64,000 nt of DNA from Andalucia godoyi And28. Its lineage: Eukaryota; Protista; Jakobida. Position 1 is the first letter of the stretch. Each line of letters begins with the position of its first letter. Below are positions 21,284-55,625 of this stretch, one piece after another. The notes beneath the pieces are model-generated. The model ran no database searches, was not told the DNA's origin, and saw nothing but the letters and a program-made list of their open reading frames with translations. The stretch spans positions 1 to 64,000 of the forward strand of contig VRVR01000046.1 of the NCBI GenBank assembly GCA_009859145.1, given 5' to 3'. The translations under genes and the position numbers were made by a program.

Positions 21284-21346
<63 letters not shown>

Positions 21347-21347
21347 G
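21283..21347 (+). repeat. (GAAAAC)n hexanucleotide repeat, about 10 copies
   Basis: Near-perfect array about 100 nt upstream of the villin ATG. Confidence 0.9.
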
Positions 21348-21600
21348 GAAAAAAGAAAAAAAGGAAGGCATTGAAGAACGAGAAAAAGGATCCGGGAAAA
21401 CTTGTGCAGATCTGCAAGTCAAGCGTCGTCTTTCTTCTCGTCTTTCCAGTTCGTGATTGACGTCGGGCAGATTGGAGAAAGAAAAGAAATTTGCAATAAT
21501 TCTAATAAAAACAAAAGTTAACGATTCACACGAATGAAAACAATTTTAATGGAAAAGGAGAGTGTCCAGTCTTTGCATCGAACTTAAATGGAAGCACTCT

Positions 21601-24600
21601 TTACAGAGTCGCGAGCTGATTCCGGAACGTCGCTTCTGGAACTGCGGAAGCGCGGGCCGTGCTGGAGGGGCCTTGTTGGAATGGGAGTGCAATGGGGTCT
21701 GAAGGAGCTTGCTTAGCAACAGGCAGAGTGGTCATCTGCATCGTCGGTGACACAAACTTTGTTGCACGATCAGACTTGCGTTTGCGGTAAATTATGAAGC
21801 CGACAACCGCAACGGCAGAGACGACCACCACTGCTCTGATAACACCCACAATGATTCCTGTAGAGTTGCTTCCGGAGCCACTGGATCCACCGCCTCCTCC
21901 CGAAGGAGGCTTTCCGACAGCAACTGCATACGAACCAAAGCCATTGACTCCAAAGGAGGCCACGCAGGTTGTACTGTCGACGGCAAAACCAGACGGACTA
22001 TACGAGGAAATGGCTCCAGCATCTGTTTTCACTACCTGCAGGGACGAGCCTGAAGGAGGACTGCAAACTCCTCTGCTAGCCAACGAGGAGCTCGCCGGGA
22101 AGTTCAGCTTCAACGTGAGTACCACCGGCTTGGAAAATGCCGTCTGAGAGGCACCAGCTGTGCTGGTTGTGAACGATATTCCGCCAATGGTAGCGGAAAG
22201 ATCCAGAACCTGACCACCAGGAAGAGTGATTGTGGCAGCTACGCTCCGGGTAGGCTGCGAAAGCACGACAACACTCACACTGGAAAACTGTGGCGGCAAG
22301 AAGTTGGACGGCATCTCAACCACGATCCCCGTCTGCTGATTCACTAACGTCGACGGCTGGGAAACATCGATCAAGACGGAGCTGTCGGAGATGCACTGCC
22401 CGCTGATTGCAGATGCCAGGACCGCACCAGTTGCAGAGTCCGAAGAAACAAAGCTAAAGACCGACAAATAGTTTCCGTTGAATGTCAAGCGCACACTGAA
22501 TGACTTTCCAAAATCATCACGGGCGACGGCCATGCAAAAGTTCGGCGTCACAGGATTGGACACATCTGACGAGCAATACTGTATGTTCAAGGACCCCATA
22601 AAAGAGACGGGCTTCAAGTTCATCATACCGGTAATGTTGATACGTTGGCCCGTGCTCACCACAGAAACAGCGCCGTTCTGACCTGCGCAGTACTTTCCAG
22701 ACATTGCGACTGCCAGTTGGATCGAAGTCTGCGGAGCCAGTGGGTTGCAAGAGCCAGATGTCATGAACTGCGTCGCAACGGTTGCGCAAGCAGGATCCGG
22801 ATACACGGTACTGGATTCACAAAACTCGACCACGTTGGTAGAGTTACCCGACAAAGACGAGGATTTGATGACATTGTACGTCGTCGTGATTTCAGTGCTC
22901 ATCCGGAAATACGAAGGACTATCCCAAACAAGAGATCCATCGCTGATCGCAGCTGAGTAATTGGTGACTGGAGGAGTAGCAATGCATGCACTCGAATTGA
23001 AGAAGACAGTCTTTGACGGAGCAATGCACCACGCACCGGACAACTGAACGCACGTTTTGCTCTTCACGGCGCTGGACTGATCTGTGAACGACACGGGAGG
23101 AAATGCTGGTCCCATTGGTTGTAGTAACGTATCCCAGGCAGGATCTGAAAAGGATGCAAACGATCGGGCATAGGCTGCTGAATACGGAACAAAACCTGCT
23201 GCCACCATCGACTGGCGCACGTCATCAATGTACACCACACTGTCGTTGCGCCAATCAAACGTCGTCATAATGAAATCAGGCGAGATGGCGGATAATTCAC
23301 GTGGCGTGAACTGGTTGCCAGCATACATTTCGTTGAAATTGAAACGCATCAGTGCGGTAGAAGGCATAACGTCAATACCGAACATAGATTTAACTGCGGG
23401 ATTAATCGAAAGCACTGTGCTGGCAAACTCGTTCCACTCCAACACATTTCCACCTGCAAACGACGCGGTGTCAACAGTCCCTGTCTGAGGATTTCCTCCT
23501 TTTGACAGGATTAACGCCTTTCCGTTGTATCTCAGTATTGTTGTAAAATGAGCACATGCGGATCCACAGCGGCCATCTGTCAACATTACGATTTTGCTCG
23601 GTGCCCAGGAAACAGAACCAGAAATGATTCCAGGAATGTACTTCCACAGCTGGTTGGACAGCAGATTCGAAAAGCAGGCATCTGGCCAGTATCCTTTGGC
23701 AGAATAAGTAGACGAAACATTCCCACGAGTCCAGTACACCGACGTGTACCAGTTACTGACACTGGTAGGATTGGAAGGATCAAAGCGCGACTCGCTACTG
23801 ATGATATCGGAGGACAAGTAGTCTGTGATTGCACTGCGACGGAGATCAAATACAGGGACGTACTTTGAATAGGTGTTCGGAGAAGATACATCCGTCCCCC
23901 ACGAATCACGCATGATCAAGTTTGCCAGATAAAAGCCCAGACATGTGTATCCTCCGCCGTTATTGCGAACGTCGATCACAAGTTTTGTGATTCCCTGCTG
24001 CACTGCATACTTTCGGCAGTCTTCGACAGTTTGCAAAAAGTTGGTGACGATCACAGTGTCCGAGTAGGAGGTGGAAGAAGGCGCAAATGTGAGGACTGAC
24101 AAGAACAGCGTTGACGGAGCCGCAGGTGACGTGGCGCAGAATACATCCTTAGTCAGCGAAGACTTGTAAACGCTCAAACCGGCCGAAGTCATCAGCGTCT
24201 GATCCACCGCTCGGGTGTCCGAATGCAATGCGAACGACGACAGCAAGTCTTGAAGAGAATTCACTTCGCGTTGAACATCCGCAGGCAGTTGCAAGAACAT
24301 TTTCAGCAGTCTGTCGGGACGCAGCAACTGGGACAGAACACTGCTCTCTGTAGTGCGGCCTCCCAGCTTCCCGGTAGGTGGAGTTGAATTTGGATCGGCG
24401 CTATTCCGAATAGAGGACAAGGCAAAGCGGATTCCTGCAGCGCTCTGCTTAGCATCGTGATCTTGGGCCTCCTTGAGCACCTGCAGCATCCCACCTTGCT
24501 TCTGGGATATGGACATCCCGCTCAGGATACTGCTGAAGAACTGGTACCTGCTCGAGAACGACTGAGTTGCCGAAACCAACCAAGGGATAGCAACACCGGT

Positions 24601-27522
24601 TCCGTCTGTGAATTTGAACTCCACCGTCGGTGAAGCTGGTGCACTCGGACCGGTGAGGAGGGGGAACAACGGGAAATCCTCTGTTAGCGCTTGCGAGAAG
24701 GCGTTCCAACGGATGAAAATATCTCGATAGCTGCCAAACCCAACAAGGATCTTTTCCGCCCAAGCCTCTGGGTTCTTTCCGTCAATGGAGAGCACGGTCT
24801 TGCCCACATACGCAGTTAAACGACCAATTCCCGCATTTGTTCCATAGTAGCCTCCAGCAAAGAAGACTTCGCTTGCAACTGTCCAGGTAACTGGGCCTGC
24901 TAGCAGACTTCCGCTTGACGCAAAACTCATAGAAAACGGAAACACAACTCCAAACGTTCGATACGGTCTTGGTCCCCAGTAATGGGTGTGTGCGTCTCCT
25001 ATGAGATTGAAGACTTTGTTCACATCATTGTGAAAGAAAAAGTCGGCATCGTAAGTCGTCAAAGCAATGCGTTCAGTTTCCATGGGTAGATTGACAGAAA
25101 TGTAGAATGGTGCTCCCGTCTGTCGGTTGATGTCTGTGAACGAATACAACTGAGAAAGGGCTCGTAAGCGAGATACAGTGTCCCGCCGCAACACTGACGA
25201 GGATGGAATCGCCGCAAAGCAGGTTGTCAGTGTCGACAATAACATGGAACCCTGATTCAAAACGCAAGGATCCGTCAAAGGGCAAGATCCAGTGGCACCA
25301 TACGTCATCGTGGTTGGTGTGCAACTGGAGGAGTCCAGGCAAATCTCGAATGCGTTCAGTCCGACTGCCACTGGAAGTGAAAACGTCCCTGTTTTTCCGC
25401 TGGATGGTATCATATACGTTCCGCCGTTAGTCGACGTGAAGGAAAACTGTATGCCGGTATTGGTCTGCAGTACTGGGATAGGTTCAGAACAGCGAGCAGT
25501 GGAAAAGGTGACAGTGGAAGACGTCTGCGTGGCGATGTTTGTCAAGCACCATGAGTTGACGAGCGCCTTGCAATTCAAACTCGCTGCAGTATCCGCTGTC
25601 TTTGTCACCATGATGGTATACTGTTTTTGCGTCAGTTTGTCCGGAGACATGACTTGCACGAGAATCCGGATGACGGAGAGTGTGGGAGGCAAGGGAACAG
25701 CAACAGATGGCGGGCTGCCGGAAACTTGTCCGCCATTCACCGTTACAATGGCACTTCCAGACACGGCCAACGCAAAAACAGTGATGCTTGTCGTTGTCTG
25801 CGACACGAAGACGGCATACTCAGTAACTTCCTGTTCGAAGGAAGGCACTAGCGTGCCCGTTGTCAGAGACAAGACAGAGAGACTCAGATCCACAGCAGGT
25901 CCGGGAGGCTTCGAGCAGGATCCAGCGGAGAGAACTTGGATAGGTGTCGAAGTGCAGGCTGGTGTTGGATACTCACCCCGTAGCAGACAGAATGCAACGT
26001 TCGTTGGCGAGATGGATTTGACAACCCCGTATGACGTAGTTGATCTACTTAACACTCGGAAGTACACGGAGCTGTCCCATATGATCGTATGCGACGAGGA
26101 TGGGCTCGACGTACTCGAAGCATTCGTAGTAGGTGGATTCTGCGAGCACTGTGCTTGATAAGAAATCTGCGCACCAGAATCATCACACCAGATGCCAGAT
26201 AATTGCGTGCAAGTTGTCATCTTTGCAGTTGTTGACTGATCCGCAAAAGAAATGGGAGGGAACCTAGGACCCAGCGCGGCAAACTTTGCACTCCAGTACG
26301 GATCGTTGAGAGTTTGGAAAGACGCCAAATAGGCTCCCGGAAATGGAAAAGCGCCTGCGTTGAGAAGCTGTGCTCTTTGGACAGCGTTATACACAATCGT
26401 ATCATTCTCCCAGTCAAACGTCAGTGTGGTGTAATCTGGAGGAATCGGAGAGAGTTCTCGTGGAATGAGGGTATTTCCAGCGTACATTTCGTTAAAGTTG
26501 TAACGCATGAGCGCGGTTGTCGGCAGTCGTCCGATGCTGAACATGGAAGCCGTTGCAGGGGACGACTGAATGGTGAAATCAGCAAAGGTGTTCCAGGCCA
26601 GAACATTTCCTCCTGTGAAGGAGGCAGTATCAACGGTTCCGTTAACCGGGTTTCCTCCTTTCGATAGCAGCAGTGCTTTTCCGTTGTAGCGCAAAATCGA
26701 TGAGAACTGAGCACACGCCGATCCGCATCGCCCATCTGTAAGCAAAAGAATCTTTGCGGGCGCCCACGAGACTGAATTTGCGATTATTCCGGGAACGTTC
26801 TTCCAGATGACTGAAGCCGAAAAGTCCGAAAAACAACCCGTCGGGAAATATCCTTTCGCAGAATACGAAGACGTGGAACCACCTCGCGTCCAGTCCACCG
26901 ACGAGTACCAGTTCGCACTGCTGAGAGGATCTGACGGACTAAGTCTTGTGTCGGTGTTTGTGAGAACGGAGCCAAGTGAGTCGGTGATGTCACTTCGACG
27001 AAGATCATACGTTGCAGCAAGCTGGGTGAACGTGCTAGGAGATGAGATATCTGTTCCCCATGCGTCTCGCATGATGAGACTCGCCAAATAGAAGTTCAAA
27101 CAGACGTATCCTCCACCGTTGTTGCGAACGTCGACAACAAGGTTCGCCAGATTTTGTTGAGCAGCGTACTTGCGGCAATTCTCCACAGTCTGCAAGAAGT
27201 CTGTAAGGATCTCTAAAGCGGGTGAAACACCATCACTCGGCGAAAACGTCATGACGGATAAGAACAACGTAGACGGGGCGGAAGTCGAAGTGCCGCAAAA
27301 GACATCTTTCGTGATGGAGACCGCGTGCACCTGCAAGTCGTTGGGTGCTGTGATCATCGGCTCACCCTTTTGAGACTCTGTGTATTGTCTGAAGACTGCT
27401 AGCAACTCCTTCAGCGAGTTCACTTTTTCCTGCAGCTCTTTGGGCAGCATGATAAACATCCGGATTAGATCGTCAGGACGCACTTGCTCCGACACTGCAT
27501 TTGCAGACGAAGAAAATGAAGG

Positions 27523-27556
<34 letters not shown>

Positions 27557-29340
27557 ACTGCTGCTGCTACTGTCGATGTTCGCGTCGGGGCTGCTTGCAA
27601 CGACGGCTGGGACGTCTGGTTTTCAGCCATGCGCCCGCTCGTTGGATTCATGTACGGATGGTTTTCCACATCATCTTCGGTCATATGAATACCTGTCAGT
27701 CCAAACAGACTGTCGCCAGGTCCGAGACTGGACATCGCCAAGTGAACATTGGACCGACTCGAAGTCAACAACAGCTGATCCGCGTCATCCATTACTTTCA
27801 AAAGTCCAGCAGGCCGCTCGCCAGCGTCTTCCGCGCCATTTGTGAACCCAATGATGGAGGAGAAAAAGACGAATCGATTCTGCGAAGGAGGTCCCATGTA
27901 AACCAGCCAAGGGATGGTAACGGAGGTGGAATCCTGGAACTGGAACTGGATTACTGGATCGGAACCCGCCATTCGAGGGCCAGTCGTCAGCCCATACCCC
28001 GGGAGTCTGTCGGTCAGACCCTCTGAAAATGCGTTCCACCGAATCCAAAAGTCGCGGTATGTGCCAAACGTCTGAAGAACGCTTGATGCCCACGCTTCCG
28101 GAGTTCGGCCGTTAATCAAAACCACCGTTTTTCCAACGTACGGAGCCAAGCTTCCAATTCCAGCGAGGATGCCGTAAAGATTATCTCCGACAACCACCTC
28201 ACTGACTGTGGACCAGGAAATTGTCGCATCGGCCAATCGTGTGAATTTCATGACAAATGGAAACATGAGGAAACTTGATCGATAGACTGTGGGTCCATAG
28301 TAATGAGTGTGCGCATCTCCAAGCTTATTGAATTGCAGGTTGACATCCAGGTGAAATTCGTAGTCATTAGCGTATTCCTGACGCGCAATTCGTTCAATTT
28401 CCCACGGTATGTTCACCCTGATGTTGAACGGAGGTCCGGTGTTCTTGCTGATGTCCGTGAAGGAGTACAACTTGCTTAGTGAGCGTAACTGGTTGACGGT
28501 CTTGCTTCGGATTACTGAGGACGACGGGATCGCGCTGTAACAGGCTTGAACCGCAGGGATTTGCTTTAATGAAAAGGCTGCCAACGGGGTGCACGGATCC
28601 TGCACCGGGCACGATCCCTTCTTACCGTACGTCAAGCTTCTGATCGTGCTGCAAGTTGTCGAGGACGGAACCTGAGTGGACGATAAACAGACCTCATAGG
28701 ATGATTTTCCAATGTAGTAGAAAGAAAAATAGCCGGTCGATGCCGTCGGATGCTCATATCGTCCCCCACGACCAGTGGTGAAGTACCAAGTGTATCCTGA
28801 GCTGTCCACCATCACCGGAGTTGCTTCTGTACATCGAGTGGTTGTGTACTCCACAGAGATTGAGAACGGGTTCTGTGCGAGCTCATAATTGTCACACCAG
28901 CTACCGCTCAACAGCTGGCACACAGCCTGTGCTGGTGACGCATTGCTTCCCGTGACTGTGATCTGGTACTCTGAGCTCATGGAGCCGTTTGCGGACAGGA
29001 CGAGTATCGTTAAAGTCACGGGCGTCACAAGGTTCAGAGGGACCGCTCGCGTAGGAGCAGCAGGGTTTCCGTTGATGGACACTGCCATTTCATATGCCGT
29101 CGCATAAGCGGTCACATCGATGGATGCCGTGGAAACAGGAACAAACACAGAATAGGAGGTCGTCTGGGGGTCAAAAGCAGGCTGCAACAATCCAACGGAC
29201 AGCGACAACGACGAAAGAGTTACTTCCGGACTGAAGGTTGCTGCCGATACACAAGCACAAAACGCAGTCAAGAGCAAGCATAACTGCAGGATGTGACACA
29301 GCCGCTGTGGAGGGCGGCTGCCAACATCAGGACTGCCCAT
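21601..29340 (-). CDS. Type-I membrane protein with two tandem modules of cadherin-like beta-sandwich, Cys-rich segment and S41/CPAF-like serine peptidase
   Basis: Signal peptide (LCHILQLCLLLTAFCACVSA). Duplicated motifs: LSSLSLS.G.L.P.F....Y.VFV, GDAHTHY, VDVRNNGGGY and LTDGRCGSACA(Q/H)F. A C-terminal TM helix is followed by RKRK. Single exon of 2,579 aa from ATG 29340. Confidence 0.85.
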
Positions 29341-29655
29341 GCTGGACGAACAGAGGAAAAAGCGATAGGAACGTTTCTCGGGAACGATAAGGCAACGAAG
29401 CGGCAATGAAAGATGATTGACGACGACGACGATAATGATAAAGAGGAACATGCGATAAGCAGCCCGTGATGTCCGAGTAGGGTAACGACGAATGAGGACC
29501 AAACCCTTGGCTCCTCAACGTCCAACGCCCGAGTGCGGCGCGTTGATGGTTGTGAAAGGCAGATACAGCAGAGTGCGCGTCATTTTTTTAAATAATTAAA
29601 TTAAATACATCGGCTCAGTAGTTTCACTGTTTGTTATTTGAACTCTGGGATTCTA

Positions 29656-43845: not shown

Positions 43846-44032
43846 AGGGGACTGTTCATGCTTCAAATCCCTCCTCGGAATCCTGCATAGAGAGAGTCTT
43901 CCATTTCAATTTCGATACTATTGAACAATTATTGTCTTAACTAGCTAATTAATTAATTGTTGGTTTTCTTGCTTGTTTTGTTGGCCTTCATTCAGCTTCG
44001 CGGAGGATACAGTCTTGCTGCTTGAAAACAGC

Positions 44033-47000
44033 ATGAGCCGACAATCCTGTATTGCTGGATGGTTTTGGCTTTTGCTAGTGTTTGCCATTGGTGCGTCGTT
44101 TTCCGTAGGGTGTTTGGCGGACAATCGTCGTCTTGGTAGACGTGGAAGCAGCGTTCATGTAGACGCATTTGGAACCACAGGCTCTGCGGGTCGCTTTCCG
44201 TCGCGGTCGTATCGGTCACTGCGCGAGCCTCGGATCGATCACACGGATGCATCTGCTGCGGATGTGTCGAGGGCGTATAGAACACGAAAAGACAATGGCC
44301 GTTCTGCGTCGGATGTCTTTCAGTTCGCTCCGGGCGCAAGTCGATATGATGCTCGAGCGTCTTCTCCGGCAAAGAAATTGCATAATATACATCCCAGAGA
44401 TCAGGCGCGTGCATTCGCGAATGTCGGACGGCTTGCTCGAGATGCTTCGAGTACGCATCGGGAATACATGCAGAAATTGGAGGAGAAGTCGAGAAGCATG
44501 CGGTCAGAGGTCACCAAGGAGTCGGAAGGCGTGTCTGTCCGTGCTCCAGTTTCAATCCCAGTTCCAGTGGGAGGGACGTTGGTCGATGATTGCGCGGTCA
44601 TTCAAGAGTTCCAGACAACTGCGTTTCGCTCGTTTCAAAACATGAGCTGCGCAGTGGGTACGTCGTGCTGTTCTTGTCCTGAAGTGACGTGCAGAGGTGG
44701 TCGCGTCGTGGGGCTCCATGTGGTCGTACAAAGCGGGGTGCTGCCACCCAGTCTCTGGAATCTTACTGCCCTCGAAGAGATCATTGTGATTGCGAGTCTG
44801 TATCCTCCAAACATTACCGACTCCGAGATTGTTCTGTTCAACATTGTGTATGTTGATATGGAAGTGACGCTCTCGTTGGGCGGAACAGTCCCATGTGGCG
44901 CGATTCCGCCAAATCTCGTACGATTCGTGCTCACCGGATCATTCGTGGATCAGCCTACTTCTTCTTCGCACGTTCTTCCAACTGTCTTTTGTCCAGGGTT
45001 TCTGGATGTCTTGCCAACGCAGTTGGAAACATTTATTCTGGTTTCTCACAGCGAAGGCTCCATCCCGGATCGGGTGTTCGACATGTCATGGTTGCACTAT
45101 TTACAGGTCCTAGGGTTTCATCGCGGATTCGTGGAGTTCGAGAAACTGTCCCAGTTTCACAATTTATTTGCGATGAGCATCGAAGGCGCGTTCGCACAAT
45201 CGATTCCAAAATTCCGCGTTCCACGTACTCTGCGAGTCTTCGATTTGTGGGGATACTTTACAGGCAATGTTGTTCACTATGCAGATTTTCCACGGGAGCT
45301 GTTCGTGTTTTCCATTGGGGGAGAATTTCTTTCGAACACCCCTGCTCCTGCTTCGTTTTGGCCCAATCTGGTGATATTGCAGTTGCAAGGCGACTTTCGG
45401 GGCGAGCTACCCTCCACGTTTGCGAGCACACTGACTTCCAATATGTCGTTTTTGCAGTTGAGTGGGCAGTTCGGCGGAGCGCTGCCTTCTTCTCTTTTGC
45501 AGCTTTCCGGGCTGGTTTCACTGGGCGTGTATGGTATGTTCCAAGATCCCATTCCAGATTTTCCGGTACAGTTTCTCGGTTTGATTTCCCTCAGTCTAAC
45601 GGGAGAGTTTTCTGGATCATTTCCAGTTGGACTGTCCAGCATCTCCTCGCTCACGTCGCTTGCATTGAGTGGTAGATTCTCCTGCGAATTGCCGCGATAT
45701 TTGTCGGCATTTCCGTCCATCACAAGCTTGGAGCTCATTGGCTTCATGGATGGAACTATACCAAACGAATGGGAAGCCATGACGAGTTTGGAGACGCTTG
45801 TTCTCGAGGGTTACATGACAGGGAACCTCAGTATAGACTTTTCAAGGATGAGAAATCTGTCCTATGTGGTTGTGATCGGAAACTTGGTGGGCAATGTGCC
45901 GTCGTTTGAAAATAATTTGCTCTTGAATACGATCATCCTAAAGGGGTTTTTCCCATCCGTTCCTACAAACTTGACCATATTCTCGTCTCTGTCCATCTTC
46001 ATCGTTTTGGGAGAATTTAACGCTTCAAATAGTATCTACATTGATTTCCCCCAGTCGTTGCAAATCTTTGAATTTTGTTGCGATGGCGCTCTCAACATGA
46101 GTTCTTTCCTGTTTTTGCCGAATTTGCAGGTTATCGATGTTTCAAGAATGACGCTAACTGGCGGGCCAATGAGCATAGGATCTTTGACGAATTTAGAGAT
46201 TGCCTTTTTTGATGGCTGCGGCCTCCAAGAACTGTCCATTTCCTCGCCTTTAGAGCGGTTGTCACTGCTTTCTGTTGCCTCGAACAACCTTTCCCGTTTG
46301 GAAAGCGCCTCTCATTTCCCAAATATTGTTGCCCTGGATATTTCAAACAATTCTCTCGCTGGCCCGGTTCCTTATTTCCAGTCATTGTGCTCCCTCAAAG
46401 CCACGGATGTTCTTCAGAATGTGTTCATTCTGGAAATGTCTTTGAATCAGTTTGACATTTTCCCATGGTCGGACACGTGTCAATTCCCAACTTTAATTTT
46501 CCTGAATGTTTCTTCGAACGTCATTTCGGGATCGATCCCGGACACTCTTCCAACGGCTGCACCGCGGTTGAAAACTGTAGACTTGTCTGCAAACCAGCTT
46601 GAAGGTAGCATCCCGTATGCGTTTATTACATTCGATGATTTAGATACCGTCAGCGTGGCGCGCAATACAGGAATGAATTTTGTGGATGACCTGCAAGGGG
46701 CTCCAGGCAGGGATGGTCTTGTCGTCGTTGGTGGTCCTTCCGACGTGCACTTGTCGTCACAAGCATTTGCAACGTGTCCGAATCTGTATTTAGCTATACC
46801 TGGTGCTGTGGCAACACTGTTCAGCGACGATTCGTCTACAGGTTTCTCGGGCTGCGAATGCCTCAATGGCTATTACGGTATTCCACCGAATTGCATGATA
46901 TGCACGGACTTGGATCAGTTCAATGCCCGATGTCCTGGAAACGGTGCCGTGTATGCTGCTGAAGGGTTTTGGGCAACCCCTCCGTTAAACATGGCGCAGG

Positions 47001-48280
47001 GAGTGTTTCCCGAGTACATCCTTCCGTGTCTGGACTCTGGTTCTGCAGTGTCTGTTTGCCACTATGACCCGTACAATGTTGATGTTTGCAAGGCCGGTCA
47101 CACGGGCCGACTGTGCGCCGATTGCGATAGCGGCTACTTTGCGCTGTCGTCGACATCCTGTGCGCAGTGTTCTAACTCGAATGCTTTTGTTGGAATTCTT
47201 GTGTTTCTTACGATTTCTGTTATTATTTTCATGTCTACCTTTGGTTTGTTCCGGTTGATTCGCGTTCGCGGTCCTCCCATCTCGAAAGTATTCTTCGAGT
47301 TTATTCAGATTTTATATTTCGTGTACGTTCCGCTTCCGTCGTCATTGCAGTTTGCAGGATCTGCGGCTGGGATCCTGAATCTTCGCGCTGTTGGTGCGCC
47401 ATGTATCTTCTCTAACTGGTCATATACTGCTTCCTATTTCACAGTGCTGCTCGTTTACCCGGCTTTCCTGGTGATCCTGTTCGTCGGTTACTTGATGTGT
47501 CTGTGTTCAATCCGCGTTTTTCGTTCTCCGGAATTCAAGCAGCGCTTTTACTATCATAGCATATGGTTATTCTTCTTCTGCTACGTTGGAATCGTGGCGA
47601 TCATTTTCGAACCGCTTTCCTGCGAAGAAGACCCTGGCCTGCACGAGAAGTACATCCGATTCTCGCCTGCGGTGCGTTGCCATCTTGGTCTCCAAGCGCT
47701 GTCTGCCGTGCTGCTTCCATTCGTGATTGTTTTCATTCCATTTGGTGTATTCTGGATTGTTCGCAAAGCCCACTTGAACCCCACGTTCTATGCGAGTGGT
47801 TCTTATTACTCCATGGTATACTTCTACTGTACCCAGCACTATAATCCCCCTTACTGGTGGTGGGACATTTGGACTCTTCTGAGACGGTCGTTGATTATTA
47901 TGCTGATTATTGACGTTCCTCCTGAGTCATCGGTTCGTGGCTTTTTCCTTGGACTGATTATGCTGACGTCTCTTGTCGCGCACATCATATACCGTCCGTT
48001 CCGCAGCCGCACTTTGAACAGAACCCAAATTGCTCTGTGGATAGTTCTAATCATGAACTACGTGGTGTCTATTCAGTATCGTGTTGTCGGAACGAATGAC
48101 TTGCCGGTCATATCGTGGATGTTCGTCTTCATCAACAGCAGTATGCTCGCTTTTGCGCTGTACTTGGCGGTCCGAGCATTATGGAGGTGGTTCCGTGGTG
48201 ATGTTGCGCTGTCTGGGGACGCTGTGTATTCTGCTGGCCGAAATCGATCGTTGGAGATGCACCTCTTGGAAAAACATTAA
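44033..48280 (+). CDS. LRR ectodomain, Cys-rich EGF/laminin-like region and ~8-9 TM C-terminal domain (TRP/FLC-like protist receptor family)
   Basis: Signal peptide, basic pro-region, LRRNT-like SCCSCPEVTCRGGRVVGL and about 24 LRRs. Then CECLNGYYG...CPG...CKAGHTGRLCADCDSGYF, KVFFEFIQIL, YWWWDIWTLLRR and IYRPF...N. Confidence 0.88.
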   Translation: MSRQSCIAGWFWLLLVFAIGASFSVGCLADNRRLGRRGSSVHVDAFGTTGSAGRFPSRSYRSLREPRIDHTDASAADVSRAYRTRKDNGRSASDVFQFAPGASRYDARASSPAKKLHNIHPRDQARAFANVGRLARDASSTHREYMQKLEEKSRSMRSEVTKESEGVSVRAPVSIPVPVGGTLVDDCAVIQEFQTTAFRSFQNMSCAVGTSCCSCPEVTCRGGRVVGLHVVVQSGVLPPSLWNLTALEEIIVIASLYPPNITDSEIVLFNIVYVDMEVTLSLGGTVPCGAIPPNLVRFVLTGSFVDQPTSSSHVLPTVFCPGFLDVLPTQLETFILVSHSEGSIPDRVFDMSWLHYLQVLGFHRGFVEFEKLSQFHNLFAMSIEGAFAQSIPKFRVPRTLRVFDLWGYFTGNVVHYADFPRELFVFSIGGEFLSNTPAPASFWPNLVILQLQGDFRGELPSTFASTLTSNMSFLQLSGQFGGALPSSLLQLSGLVSLGVYGMFQDPIPDFPVQFLGLISLSLTGEFSGSFPVGLSSISSLTSLALSGRFSCELPRYLSAFPSITSLELIGFMDGTIPNEWEAMTSLETLVLEGYMTGNLSIDFSRMRNLSYVVVIGNLVGNVPSFENNLLLNTIILKGFFPSVPTNLTIFSSLSIFIVLGEFNASNSIYIDFPQSLQIFEFCCDGALNMSSFLFLPNLQVIDVSRMTLTGGPMSIGSLTNLEIAFFDGCGLQELSISSPLERLSLLSVASNNLSRLESASHFPNIVALDISNNSLAGPVPYFQSLCSLKATDVLQNVFILEMSLNQFDIFPWSDTCQFPTLIFLNVSSNVISGSIPDTLPTAAPRLKTVDLSANQLEGSIPYAFITFDDLDTVSVARNTGMNFVDDLQGAPGRDGLVVVGGPSDVHLSSQAFATCPNLYLAIPGAVATLFSDDSSTGFSGCECLNGYYGIPPNCMICTDLDQFNARCPGNGAVYAAEGFWATPPLNMAQGVFPEYILPCLDSGSAVSVCHYDPYNVDVCKAGHTGRLCADCDSGYFALSSTSCAQCSNSNAFVGILVFLTISVIIFMSTFGLFRLIRVRGPPISKVFFEFIQILYFVYVPLPSSLQFAGSAAGILNLRAVGAPCIFSNWSYTASYFTVLLVYPAFLVILFVGYLMCLCSIRVFRSPEFKQRFYYHSIWLFFFCYVGIVAIIFEPLSCEEDPGLHEKYIRFSPAVRCHLGLQALSAVLLPFVIVFIPFGVFWIVRKAHLNPTFYASGSYYSMVYFYCTQHYNPPYWWWDIWTLLRRSLIIMLIIDVPPESSVRGFFLGLIMLTSLVAHIIYRPFRSRTLNRTQIALWIVLIMNYVVSIQYRVVGTNDLPVISWMFVFINSSMLAFALYLAVRALWRWFRGDVALSGDAVYSAGRNRSLEMHLLEKH

Positions 48281-52455: not shown

Positions 52456-55245
52456 CTAGGTGTCGTGCAAGCGGTCCAATCGCAGACGGATGGCGTCCAA
52501 TGTTTCCTTGGCCTCTTCCACCTTCTGAGCAATCTTCTGGATCGTCAACCGGAACAAATTCTGCAAATCTGGATCATCAATGGCGTCCATTCGTCGTGCA
52601 GCCTCTGAATTGAGACGCATCGAACGCATCCGAACATTCATTTCATCGATGCATGTCGTGGCATACGGTAGGAACGATTCATGGATATCTTCCAGTTTGG
52701 CAAAATACTCTCGTTCTTCGGCAGTAAGAGGCTCGGACAGCTGCAGAGAAGACTTCGATCGCACAACCTCAATTTTCCGCGAAATCTCCTCCGTTTTTGC
52801 CTTTGACGCGTTCATATTGGCCACGATCTCCTTGTCACGCGCTTCAACCTGTGTTTTGAGGTCCCGTACACGTTGCTTCGTTGCATGCAGCAGTTTCATC
52901 CGCTGCTCGAGGTGCGGCAGCCCCTGAGACTCACAGAACACCTGTAACTGAGTTATTCTCGTCAGAACAGACTCCTCAACAGATTTCCAAAATGTAGAGA
53001 GTGTTTCCGCTGCAGCAGCCGCTGAAATTGGTTTCGATCCGGATGGATCAATATAAATCTTGTCGAGCTTTTTTGTTGCGGCAAGACTCGCTAACGTCTT
53101 ATTCAACATTTCTTGAAGCGGCTCCAACTCTCGAACAGACGACACTTGTCCTGATTTAACGGAACCGATCACGCTGGCAGGCTGCAATGCACCTTTTGCA
53201 GTCAACGCAGTCACAGATGAAGCGGAAGCAACGGCCGCCGTCGACGACGACGAAGACGAAAATGAATCCTGTCGTGGTAGCAGAGCAGCAGCAAATCTTC
53301 CTGATGCACGATCGAGCACAAGCACAAATGGCTTCACAAACGAAACAAGGTGGGCAATAACGACGTCCGAACCCCTTTCCAAGTTTGACAAGGTCTTTCC
53401 GGCCTGGGGAAAGTGCATGACAAGCCGTTCGAGAGTCGGAAACTGATCTGCGGCAGGCGTCGCCACAAGTTCTTCGTATGATCGCAAAAAATGGGCACAA
53501 GATCCGTGCAGAACACCATTCGATCCAACAATCACAAACGAATCCGAAATAATCTCGTGCATCAACATTGTAGAAAGAATCTGACCCGTAGATGATCCGC
53601 TTGAAGACGCTGAAGACGCAACAGAAGTTCCCGTTGCCGTTGCCGTTGCCGGCCTTCCTGCTGCTGTTGATGATGTGAAAGAAGAAGAAGAAGAAGAAGA
53701 AGCGGACGACGACGACGACGACGACTGCTGCGTCGATGTCGGAGGAACTGTCGAAGGAATCATGTAGGAAGACAGGATACCGATCCAGGAAAGATGCGGA
53801 GAGACAAATGGATCCGCCACGTGCTTAAACTTTGGCATCACAAGCCCTGTGGCCATGATTTGATCAATTCTTCCATTTGAATAGTACCGCAGAAAACAAA
53901 GCGGAGCGGATGACGTATCTTGCATGCATCGAATTCCAATGCAGGAAAACGCAACTGAACTCAAACCAAGCTTTTCCACTGCACTCTCGATGCTTTGCGT
54001 ACTCGTTGAGACAACTCGTGGAAGGTGATCTGAAATGTCGCGGACCTGTGGCTCGCAGCCAAACGGAAACTCGCCACGAGAAAGCGGAGCCGTCAGCTTA
54101 TGCTGTGAAGACAGAGATGTGGACGTAAACGTGGACTCCATGAATGATCGGAAAGCCGCTTCATATTCATCCACAACAGCATTCAGAGAGTCGGCTTGGA
54201 ACGATTGTGCTGTCGATGAATTCGTTTCGGAATTGACGTTCGACGAAGACAATGACAGCAGCGCATCCTGAACCTCCTGCTGCAGATCCGACAGGATATC
54301 CTTCAGAAAGAGGCAAGAACGCGGAATAATAGGCGTGATCACGCAGATTTGGCCTGTTGCTGACACGAGCAACACAGAGAGGTGCCACATCGAATGAATA
54401 CCGGGATGGAACACAGCACCCTCCGAACAGCCAAAGCAAAAGTCCACAAACGACGCTGCTAGAGGCACCGACTGCTCTGGAACTGCGGCCGAAATCAAAA
54501 CATTGAAAACAAGGAATGCATTCGGCGTCAACACACAGAGATGCGCGGCCGACAGTGGATGGAATTTGAACACGACGCGAACTGATCGGCCCGAGAGTCC
54601 TGGAGACCCTGCGCTGGTACTTATCGAAGTCTCAGTCGATGTCTTTTGAACCGAATACGGAGACGCATAAGGCGATGATGATGATGAGTAGGGCAGTGAC
54701 ATTGACGGAGGTGGCGGTGAAGACACAACATGTGGCGAGTACAGCTTGGACGCAACCGGCCGCACAGGAACTCTGAGAATAGTGACTCGCGGGGGCGACG
54801 GTGGAAGCGAAACCAGCAAAATTCCAGCATTGGAGGTTTGCACTGCAAGGAAGCACCCATCACGCGAAAACGACAGCCTTGAAACGGAAGACAATGCACG
54901 CTCGGGAATGGAAAAGGGAGAAAGAAGCGGCACTCGCTCAGGTACAACGTTTCGGATGCATGACTGCTGATGTCGTGGTTGATTTTGTTGTTGCTGTTGT
55001 TCTGCAGATTCAGCAAAGAAAGAGATTGGACGAGGTGGAGGCGTGACTGCGTCGTTGAGATCCACGAGAAAAAGCGAAGATTCAAGTGTACCGATTGGAA
55101 TCGAGGATCCAATCGCCAGGAGATGTCCATCGTGGATTGCAAGTGTGCATGATGCCAGGTCGAGGCCATGCACAGCTGAGATGTTCGCTTGAAGCCATGC
55201 GCACACGTCCTGGCCTAGAACCTCAGAAGATGCCGGAGAAGTCAT
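52456..55245 (-). CDS. NUP88: Nucleoporin Nup88/Nup82-like (beta-propeller and C-terminal coiled coil)
   Basis: FKFHPLSAAHLCVLTPNAFLVFNV...PEQ...FVDFCFG...WHLSVLLVSATGQICVITPIIP matches the Nup88 blade pattern. The coiled-coil tail includes LSEPLTAEEREYFAKL. Confidence 0.68.
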   Translation of the reverse strand: MTSPASSEVLGQDVCAWLQANISAVHGLDLASCTLAIHDGHLLAIGSSIPIGTLESSLFLVDLNDAVTPPPRPISFFAESAEQQQQQNQPRHQQSCIRNVVPERVPLLSPFSIPERALSSVSRLSFSRDGCFLAVQTSNAGILLVSLPPSPPRVTILRVPVRPVASKLYSPHVVSSPPPPSMSLPYSSSSSPYASPYSVQKTSTETSISTSAGSPGLSGRSVRVVFKFHPLSAAHLCVLTPNAFLVFNVLISAAVPEQSVPLAASFVDFCFGCSEGAVFHPGIHSMWHLSVLLVSATGQICVITPIIPRSCLFLKDILSDLQQEVQDALLSLSSSNVNSETNSSTAQSFQADSLNAVVDEYEAAFRSFMESTFTSTSLSSQHKLTAPLSRGEFPFGCEPQVRDISDHLPRVVSTSTQSIESAVEKLGLSSVAFSCIGIRCMQDTSSAPLCFLRYYSNGRIDQIMATGLVMPKFKHVADPFVSPHLSWIGILSSYMIPSTVPPTSTQQSSSSSSSASSSSSSSFTSSTAAGRPATATATGTSVASSASSSGSSTGQILSTMLMHEIISDSFVIVGSNGVLHGSCAHFLRSYEELVATPAADQFPTLERLVMHFPQAGKTLSNLERGSDVVIAHLVSFVKPFVLVLDRASGRFAAALLPRQDSFSSSSSSTAAVASASSVTALTAKGALQPASVIGSVKSGQVSSVRELEPLQEMLNKTLASLAATKKLDKIYIDPSGSKPISAAAAAETLSTFWKSVEESVLTRITQLQVFCESQGLPHLEQRMKLLHATKQRVRDLKTQVEARDKEIVANMNASKAKTEEISRKIEVVRSKSSLQLSEPLTAEEREYFAKLEDIHESFLPYATTCIDEMNVRMRSMRLNSEAARRMDAIDDPDLQNLFRLTIQKIAQKVEEAKETLDAIRLRLDRLHDT

Positions 55246-55625
55246 CTTGTCCCACACAAGTTGACGGAATAAAAGAGAAAGACGGAAGTGGGCCTTTTTT
55301 CCTCTTCTTTTTATTATTATTTTATTTAATTGAGAAAAACGTGCCTGCAAAATAGTAAAAGAGTTTGGAGTTTTTCAACTTTGTGAGCAGCGCAGCCTCA
55401 AGAGAAGAAGGACTGACATGCCAATGACAGCGACTCGTGTGCACAATGACAGTGCACCAACGCTCGCACATGTCGCGAGTTCTGTCCCAAGAAAGGCAAA
55501 CTCCCGAAAGATTTTTGTTTCCATGTCCGAACGTACGAAGACGCGCATACGCACAAACGCACAAACGGGCATACTGTATCGGAGTCATTTCACTGCGGGG
55601 GAGGAAGAAAAGAGAAAAAGAAAAG

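Follow-up and report, generated by a model that had tools for sequence, protein, structure and literature searches.

A predicted two-headed, membrane-anchored CPAF-like S41 protease in the jakobid Andalucia godoyi

An old internal duplication of an ectodomain cassette

We analyzed a 64,000-nucleotide stretch of the jakobid Andalucia godoyi And28 (assembly GCA_009859145.1, contig VRVR01000046.1, positions 1 to 64,000), hereafter the window, and examined a gene on its minus strand that encodes a giant protein with two units resembling CPAF, the S41-family protease of Chlamydia. The reading frame is uninterrupted from 21601 to 29502 and, counted from the Met at 29340 as first residue, gives an intron-free product of 2,579 amino acids (aa) that is identical in sequence and length to a database gene model (P0001). 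The features of the gene are collected in Table 1.

Hydropathy analysis bore out the transmembrane (TM) anchor and cytosolic tail that had been predicted for this protein. The signal peptide, the stalk, the TM helix and the tail are each present in a single copy, which describes a single chain with a predicted type I membrane topology and supports the part of the original prediction that placed it at the cell surface. At 21865-21930 (aa ~2470-2492) the stalk ends in ...TTCVASFGVNGFGSYAVAV and then a Gly/Ser spacer, an end that loosely resembles the last strand of GPS/GAIN-type stalks, without the residues at which those are cleaved (between HL and T/S), and the Pfam GPS model found no match in the stalk of the window protein.

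The ectodomain is internally duplicated. When the first 1,110 residues were compared with the rest of the protein, aa 39-1109 and aa 1151-2160 were joined in one alignment of 1,085 columns with 45% identity (902 bits, E = 0), so that the predicted duplication of about 1,050-1,100 aa was recovered as two units of ~1,050 aa. Unit 2 starts directly after unit 1, with a seamless junction at aa 1150/1151. The repeated cassette consists, in order, of a cadherin-like beta-sandwich, a six-Cys domain, the protease module and a second six-Cys domain, and the two protease heads are separated by a three-domain spacer of ~330 aa.

A cadherin-like beta-sandwich had been proposed for each unit, and Pfam recognized PF12733 twice (3e-19 for the two domains in the whole protein). 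The Cys-rich segments that had been described are also real, but there is not one per unit: a six-Cys domain of ~105 aa occurs four times, once on either side of each protease module, with pairwise E values between the copies ranging from 3e-25 to 6e-4. Its pattern is C..L..(S)WC ... C ... C ... C ... GSC. No Pfam model matched the domain, which may represent an extracellular fold not described before. For the two PF12733 domains (28936-29226 and 25588-25890), the best database matches were large bacterial surface proteins from Mucilaginibacter, Citromicrobium and Paenibacillus, at 32-39% identity. A homology search with the whole protein likewise returned only bacterial matches, all to the cadherin-like domain, and a bacterial origin of this domain in the protist is possible.

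Table 1. Features of the two-headed protease gene in the window (positions on the forward strand of the window; residue numbers from the Met at 29340)
Feature	Position	Strand	Basis
Complete coding sequence including stop codon; 2,579-aa type I membrane protein (predicted) with two protease units	21601..29340	-	Open reading frame (ORF) and translation; P0001 of equal length
Signal-peptide-like N-terminal segment, aa 1-33; putative cleavage between ...CACVSA and A	29242..29340	-	Hydropathy peak aa 13-33; cleavage site predicted from sequence
Cadherin-like beta-sandwich domain 1, aa 39-135	28936..29226	-	Pfam PF12733, 3.9e-13
Six-Cys domain A1, aa 136-262	28555..28935	-	Pairwise BLAST among four copies
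CPAF-like S41 protease module 1, aa 263-1039; His344 (28309-28311), DVRNNGGG from aa 737, Ser874 (26719-26721)	26224..28554	-	Pfam PF03572, 27.5 bits (cut-off 24); motifs; family conservation
Variable low-complexity insert of module 1, aa 501-619 (119 aa), poly-Thr included	27484..27840	-	Inter-unit alignment
Conserved helix of module 1, aa 620-652; candidate auto-inhibitory segment (putative function)	27385..27483	-	48% identity between units, flanks 25% and 13%
Six-Cys domain B1, aa 1040-1150	25891..26223	-	Pairwise BLAST
Cadherin-like beta-sandwich domain 2, aa 1151-1251	25588..25890	-	Pfam PF12733, 2.8e-11
Six-Cys domain A2, aa 1252-1369	25234..25587	-	Pairwise BLAST (copy at aa 1252-1372), A1 vs A2 E 8e-23
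CPAF-like S41 protease module 2, aa 1370-2092; His1451 (24988-24990), DVRNNGGG from aa 1790, Ser1927 (23560-23562)	23065..25233	-	Pfam PF03572, 33.4 bits (cut-off 24); motifs
Variable insert of module 2, aa 1610-1672 (63 aa)	24325..24513	-	Inter-unit alignment
Conserved helix of module 2, aa 1673-1705	24226..24324	-	Inter-unit alignment; helical at low confidence in unit-2 model only
Six-Cys domain B2, aa 2093-2205	22726..23064	-	Pairwise BLAST (copy at aa 2092-2205), B1 vs B2 E 3e-25
Unduplicated stalk, aa 2206-2492 (~290 aa), Gly/Ser-rich spacer at end	21865..22725	-	Translation; no family match (Pfam)
Single TM helix, aa ~2493-2517	21790..21864	-	Hydropathy maximum 2.66
Cytoplasmic tail, aa 2518-2579 (62 aa), starts YRKRK	21604..21789	-	Translation and hydropathy

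Conservation between the units is uneven along the cassette. The S41 core is the best-conserved part (65-68% identity), followed by the His-bearing and PDZ-like parts (52%) and the accessory domains (37-41%). The variable insert and the conserved helix that had been described within each module were both found: the insert is only 25% identical and carries 56 gap columns, the helix after it (aa 620-652 and 1673-1705) is 48% identical, and the next 23 residues fall to 13%. The helix is an island of conservation between the two units. The poly-Thr stretch reported for the insert of unit 1 is encoded by a perfect (ACA)11 microsatellite at 27523-27556 and occurs in unit 1 only; the tract probably arose by recent slippage, and its length may vary between strains.

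We then considered the age of the duplication. In a neighbor-joining tree of family members the two window units were sisters, with 54.5% identity compared to ~30% with the nearest paralogues. At the nucleotide level, the match between the units was confined to 929 nt at 66.5% identity. Because the proportion of synonymous differences between the cores was saturated (pS 0.77) while that of nonsynonymous differences was 0.27 (pN), the duplication is old, and both copies have been under purifying selection. An old internal duplication in this lineage thus copied the whole ectodomain cassette, while the signal peptide, stalk, TM helix and tail stayed single.

Two neighboring paralogous genes joined by an assembly or reading error could in principle produce a similar picture. 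A chytrid member of the same family (P0140), in which a TM helix and a second signal peptide interrupt the protein midway, looks like just such a pair of adjacent genes merged into one model. In the window, the frame runs on for 7.7 kb with no stop and passes seamlessly through the unit junction. We looked between the two units for an internal signal peptide or TM helix by hydropathy and ORF analysis and found neither, and the stalk and TM helix are present only once. We therefore rejected the explanation of a fused-gene artefact, to which we give next to no credence.

Relation of the modules to CPAF and their catalytic residues

The assignment of the modules to family S41, as originally predicted, was upheld by Pfam, in which each unit alone passed the gathering score of Peptidase_S41 (PF03572; scores in Table 1); the whole protein scored 55.9 bits over two stretches. 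To place the family among solved structures (PDB), we searched with a profile of 95 full-length members. The best match was CPAF (CT_858; 3dja, 3dor and 3dpn) with E 7e-9, in agreement with the CPAF-like character claimed for the units. It was also the longest match: its 250 profile positions (163-412) take in the PDZ-like domain and the linker and reach halfway into the core. Behind it ranked the D1 C-terminal processing protease, CtpB, Prc and IRBP/RBP3. A smaller profile of 34 sequences recovered the same set of structures more weakly (CPAF E 1.5e-3). Among these 34 family members, 14 matched the CPAF-like PDZ domain (Pfam PF23658, PDZ_CPAF_rel), the best with E 1.7e-5. AlphaFold2, given the sister unit as the sole alignment, modeled unit 2 (730 aa) with a mean predicted local distance difference test score (pLDDT) of 32 and its core (426 aa) with 39. 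When the pLDDT 32 model was submitted to Foldseek, the top 18 matches were all S41 proteins, although the matches were weak (best E 0.0095, TM-score about 0.2).

The order of parts within each module is His, PDZ-like domain, variable linker and Ser core. Chlamydia trachomatis CPAF (MEROPS S41) shares this layout with the window heads, having a His-bearing N-terminal region, a PDZ-like domain, a linker and a Ser-bearing core, and the linker of the window heads lies at the place of CPAF's excised inhibitory helix (PMC4734761). The differences are considerable. CPAF is a secreted, soluble bacterial protein of ~600 aa with one module, whereas the window gene encodes a eukaryotic chain with two modules, cadherin-like and Cys-rich spacers and a TM anchor. 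The similarity is seen only by profile, and the window core has an extra insertion of ~95 aa between NGGG and Ser.

A motif search of the translation found GDAH at aa 341 and 1448, DVRNNGGG at aa 737 and 1790, and DGRCGSAC at aa 869 and 1922. The motifs had been read correctly from the letters, and the positions given for the His and Ser codons were exact. The His of (G)DAH and the D..NGGG and G.CGS.C motifs were invariant or at least 90% conserved in the 95 sequences; in profile columns, G426 was invariant, and D420, N424, G427 and S557 were each conserved at 90% or more. The Ser is called the nucleophile by its position inside the Pfam match and not by structure. Two conserved Glu columns, NFNEMY and PRE, are kept in both heads and are candidates for the third residue of a triad.

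Bacterial and plastid C-terminal processing peptidases use a Ser/Lys dyad. These enzymes (CtpA/D1 protease, CtpB and Prc/Tsp) share PF03572, D..NGGG and a Ser-bearing core with the window protein, but the N-terminal His is conserved in the window family, and the placement of the PDZ domain and the size differ. The residue before the invariant GG, the site of the catalytic Lys in Ctp/Prc enzymes, falls in a column that is not conserved across the family. From this pattern of conservation, each head would most likely have a Ser/His (+Glu) endopeptidase center rather than the Ser/Lys dyad of Ctp/Prc, with the His N-terminal to the PDZ-like domain inferred to serve as the catalytic His.

Out of the Andalucia godoyi paralogues, one (ANDGO_02937; P0025, 848 aa) no longer has the His, the NGGG loop or the Ser. 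This protein is likely to be a pseudoprotease within the family, and the joint loss fits the behavior of a catalytic set. The existence of such a protein shows that the family yields pseudoproteases and raises the question of whether the two heads of the window protein have functionally diverged, with one a working protease and the other regulatory, substrate-capturing or directed at different substrates. The units are only 45% identical overall, and the largest differences between them lie in the inserts (119 vs 63 aa, with poly-Thr in unit 1 only) and in the PDZ-like and N-terminal domains. On the other hand, His, NGGG, Ser and both Glu candidates are retained in both heads, and the cores are the part most alike and under purifying selection. 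We consider divergence of this kind to be distinctly unlikely.

We also weighed a non-catalytic role, in which the S41 modules would bind ligands as in IRBP and the cadherin-like and Cys-rich domains would serve in attachment. Vertebrate IRBP/RBP3 resembles the window protein in having several tandem S41-like modules in one secreted chain, and the family profile matched its structures (9frx, E 3.7e-6; 7jti). The IRBP modules, however, are retinoid-binding units of only ~300 aa without the catalytic residues (PMC2000878, PMC2185538), and IRBP has no TM anchor. An adhesion or ligand-binding protein would be consistent with this precedent of an S41-like chain without protease activity (PMC2185538), with the presence of the cadherin-like and Cys-rich domains, and with the fact that no activity has been demonstrated for any eukaryotic member of the family. 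The loss of catalytic residues seen in IRBP was not found here: both units keep His, NGGG and Ser, which hardly vary across the family, and ANDGO_02937 lost all three at once, the pattern expected under selection for catalysis. We rejected an IRBP-like role as the principal explanation because the catalytic motifs are intact, and we consider it very improbable.

The family and its other tandem members

An exhaustive HMMER search with unit 2 returned 609 representatives at E <= 1e-3, of which 185 had E <= 1e-10. A word-indexed homology search gave nothing for the family and did not return even the query itself, so that negatives from such a search are unreliable for proteins rich in low-complexity sequence. 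The best named relatives were three Andalucia godoyi proteins, followed by one from the jakobid Stygiella incarcerata. Besides jakobids, the named members came from metamonads (Monocercomonoides, Anaeramoeba), Amoebozoa (Nolandella, Stenamoeba, Vermistella), the stramenopile Triparma, the breviate Pygsuia, the choanoflagellate Salpingoeca infusionum and the chytrid Phlyctochytrium. They are annotated as hypothetical or merely as S41 or tail-specific proteases, and no function in free-living protists has been reported for the family.

Among 97 full-length members, 48 had a C-terminal TM helix and 64 an N-terminal hydrophobic segment, indicating that the layout of a membrane-anchored ectoprotease is a habit of the family. 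A hypervariable linker of 60-190 aa separates the PDZ-like domain from the core throughout. Most members carry one module. Other eukaryotic CPAF-like S41 proteins (AvrStb9, Panther PTHR37049; fungal "peptidase S41 family proteins"; ANDGO_08529; ANDGO_06898) are single-headed and lack cadherin-like and six-Cys domains, in the case of AvrStb9 by indirect comparison. One Stygiella incarcerata protein (P0164, 1,660 aa) combines a single CPAF-like S41 module with a TM helix and a stalk of the polycystin/REJ type, built from fn3, REJ and GPS domains and equipped with an autoproteolysis motif of its own.

Two complete modules and a TM helix were found in Monocercomonoides exilis (P0038 = MONOS_16490; P0166 = MONOS_13037fu16266; and an older model, P0168 = MONOS_16266) and in a protein from an uncultured relative (P0130). 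Like the window protein, these tandems have DAH, NGGG and G.CGS.C in each module, Cys-rich segments and a C-terminal TM helix. They differ in that they stem from a separate duplication, share ~20% identity with the window units, are much shorter at ~1,600 aa, contain no cadherin-like domain and have less Cys-rich spacer between the modules. In the neighbor-joining tree the metamonad tandem units formed a clade of their own, apart from the window units, which were sisters to each other; tandem fusion therefore arose independently at least two times.

The original prediction had recognized this architecture in no described protein. That claim did not survive as it stood, since tandem CPAF-like S41 modules with a TM helix occur in MONOS_16490, MONOS_13037fu16266 and P0130, and IRBP/RBP3 also chains four S41-like modules (PMC2185538). 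We searched the literature for tandem CPAF-like proteases and found no description, and the nearest architectural parallels, the Monocercomonoides proteins, are unstudied database entries. What is new, as judged from the sequences, is the combination of two apparently active CPAF-type heads with cadherin-like domains, four six-Cys spacer domains and a TM anchor.

Proposed activation of the heads and significance

Together these data suggest that the product of the gene is probably an ectoprotease, anchored in the membrane with type I topology, whose two CPAF-type S41 serine-protease heads are both catalytically competent. Each head would be laid out as in CPAF, with a His-bearing N-terminal domain, a PDZ-like domain, a hypervariable linker and an alpha/beta core that carries the NGGG loop and the Ser nucleophile. 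CPAF is made as a zymogen: an inhibitory helix of ~40 aa, placed between its PDZ domain and core, covers the active site until successive autoproteolytic cuts excise it (PMC4734761). By analogy, each head of the window protein is probably made as a zymogen as well. The linker and the conserved helix would block the cleft until excised, and the helix, being conserved between the units, is a natural candidate for the inhibitory plug. The ectodomain would face either the medium or the inside of a phagosome or endosome. Such an enzyme would most likely serve a bacterivorous flagellate by degrading or processing extracellular, prey or surface proteins.

Several observations weigh against this interpretation. 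Matches of the single sequence were weak (phmmer against PDB, E 0.76; the NCBIfam CPAF model, E 0.024), and PF23658 scored only 20.4 bits on the window protein, below its cut-off of 27 and from unit 1 only. Both window units carry a Lys before the GG, so a Ser/Lys contribution to catalysis in these two units is conceivable. The helix is kept only between the window units and not across the family. With models at pLDDT 32 and 39, what fold the modules adopt, which residue completes the triad and what the helix does are read from sequence rather than structure. The start codon is ambiguous, as there is an in-frame ATG at 29449-29451, 37 codons upstream of 29340, and both the outward- or lumen-facing placement of the protein and its expression are likewise deduced from the DNA. 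The lack of demonstrated protease activity among eukaryotic members extends to AvrStb9, an avirulence protein of Zymoseptoria tritici that was described as CPAF-like and whose activity is untested (PMC10208482). With respect to the start codon, the upstream ATG would add a hydrophobic N-terminus (MFLFIIIVVVV...), and the N-terminus is secretory with either start.

Mature CPAF is an autoprocessed homodimer (PMC10208482, PMC4734761), and a further possibility, raised in the original prediction, is that the heads of the window protein pair with each other to form a CPAF-like dimer within one chain. Activation of the CPAF zymogen is a trans-autocleavage that needs dimerization, and here the partner would be built in: the protein would be a single-chain, pre-dimerized S41 zymogen, self-activating at the membrane whatever its concentration, and evolved independently in jakobids and metamonads. 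Tandem fusion arose more than once, in the lineage of the window protein and in the clade of Monocercomonoides and P0130, and two adjacent copies are merged in the chytrid gene model; this hints that having two heads together was repeatedly advantageous. The three-domain spacer is long enough for pairing, and every catalytic motif is kept in both heads. The repeated fusion and the helix island, which lies at the position of CPAF's excised inhibitory helix (PMC4734761), are compatible with a self-activating pre-dimer but no proof of it. Against an intramolecular dimer, duplication of a whole cassette is an ordinary outcome of tandem duplication whether or not a dimer forms, and the family is mostly single-headed. 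Multi-headed membrane proteases also exist in other families, and ACE, carboxypeptidase D and polyserase are not known to pair their heads in order to work. We regard an intramolecular dimer as unlikely, though not far-fetched, and continue to favor two competent heads on a membrane anchor, paired or not.

The protease gene lies in a dense neighborhood of long open frames on both strands, in which the other genes are ordinary eukaryotic ones, including those for a villin/gelsolin, a DEAH helicase, a GH38 mannosidase and a BART-domain protein. No further paralogue of the protease was found within the window. The 410-bp spacer from the stop codon of the protease gene to the start of the villin/gelsolin gene contains a hexanucleotide microsatellite, (AAACGA)11.5, at 21284-21352. 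Elsewhere in the window, an ORF on the plus strand (43973-48280) encodes a 1,435-aa leucine-rich repeat protein with a weak match to DUF7630, and one on the minus strand (52456-55350) encodes a 964-aa protein without a Pfam match. The Andalucia godoyi genome as a whole is compact, ~20 Mb in size and mostly intron-free (PMC7050145).

What is known of CPAF-type S41 proteases comes from a single bacterial virulence factor that has been studied intensively and from one fungal avirulence protein. The family of the window protein counts at least 609 clustered members, extends over most eukaryotic supergroups and is often membrane-anchored. A secondary reading, likewise unlikely, is that this pan-eukaryotic family was the stock from which chlamydial CPAF was acquired. 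On the sequence evidence, the window protein is a predicted lineage-specific two-headed ectoprotease, a rare variant of a widespread and biochemically unstudied eukaryotic family. In this harmless organism, the compact, intron-poor genome means that the gene could be expressed straight from genomic DNA for tests of activity, autoprocessing and substrate range. The two-headed form, having arisen at least two times, offers a natural experiment to show whether activation that depends on a dimer can be fixed in one chain.

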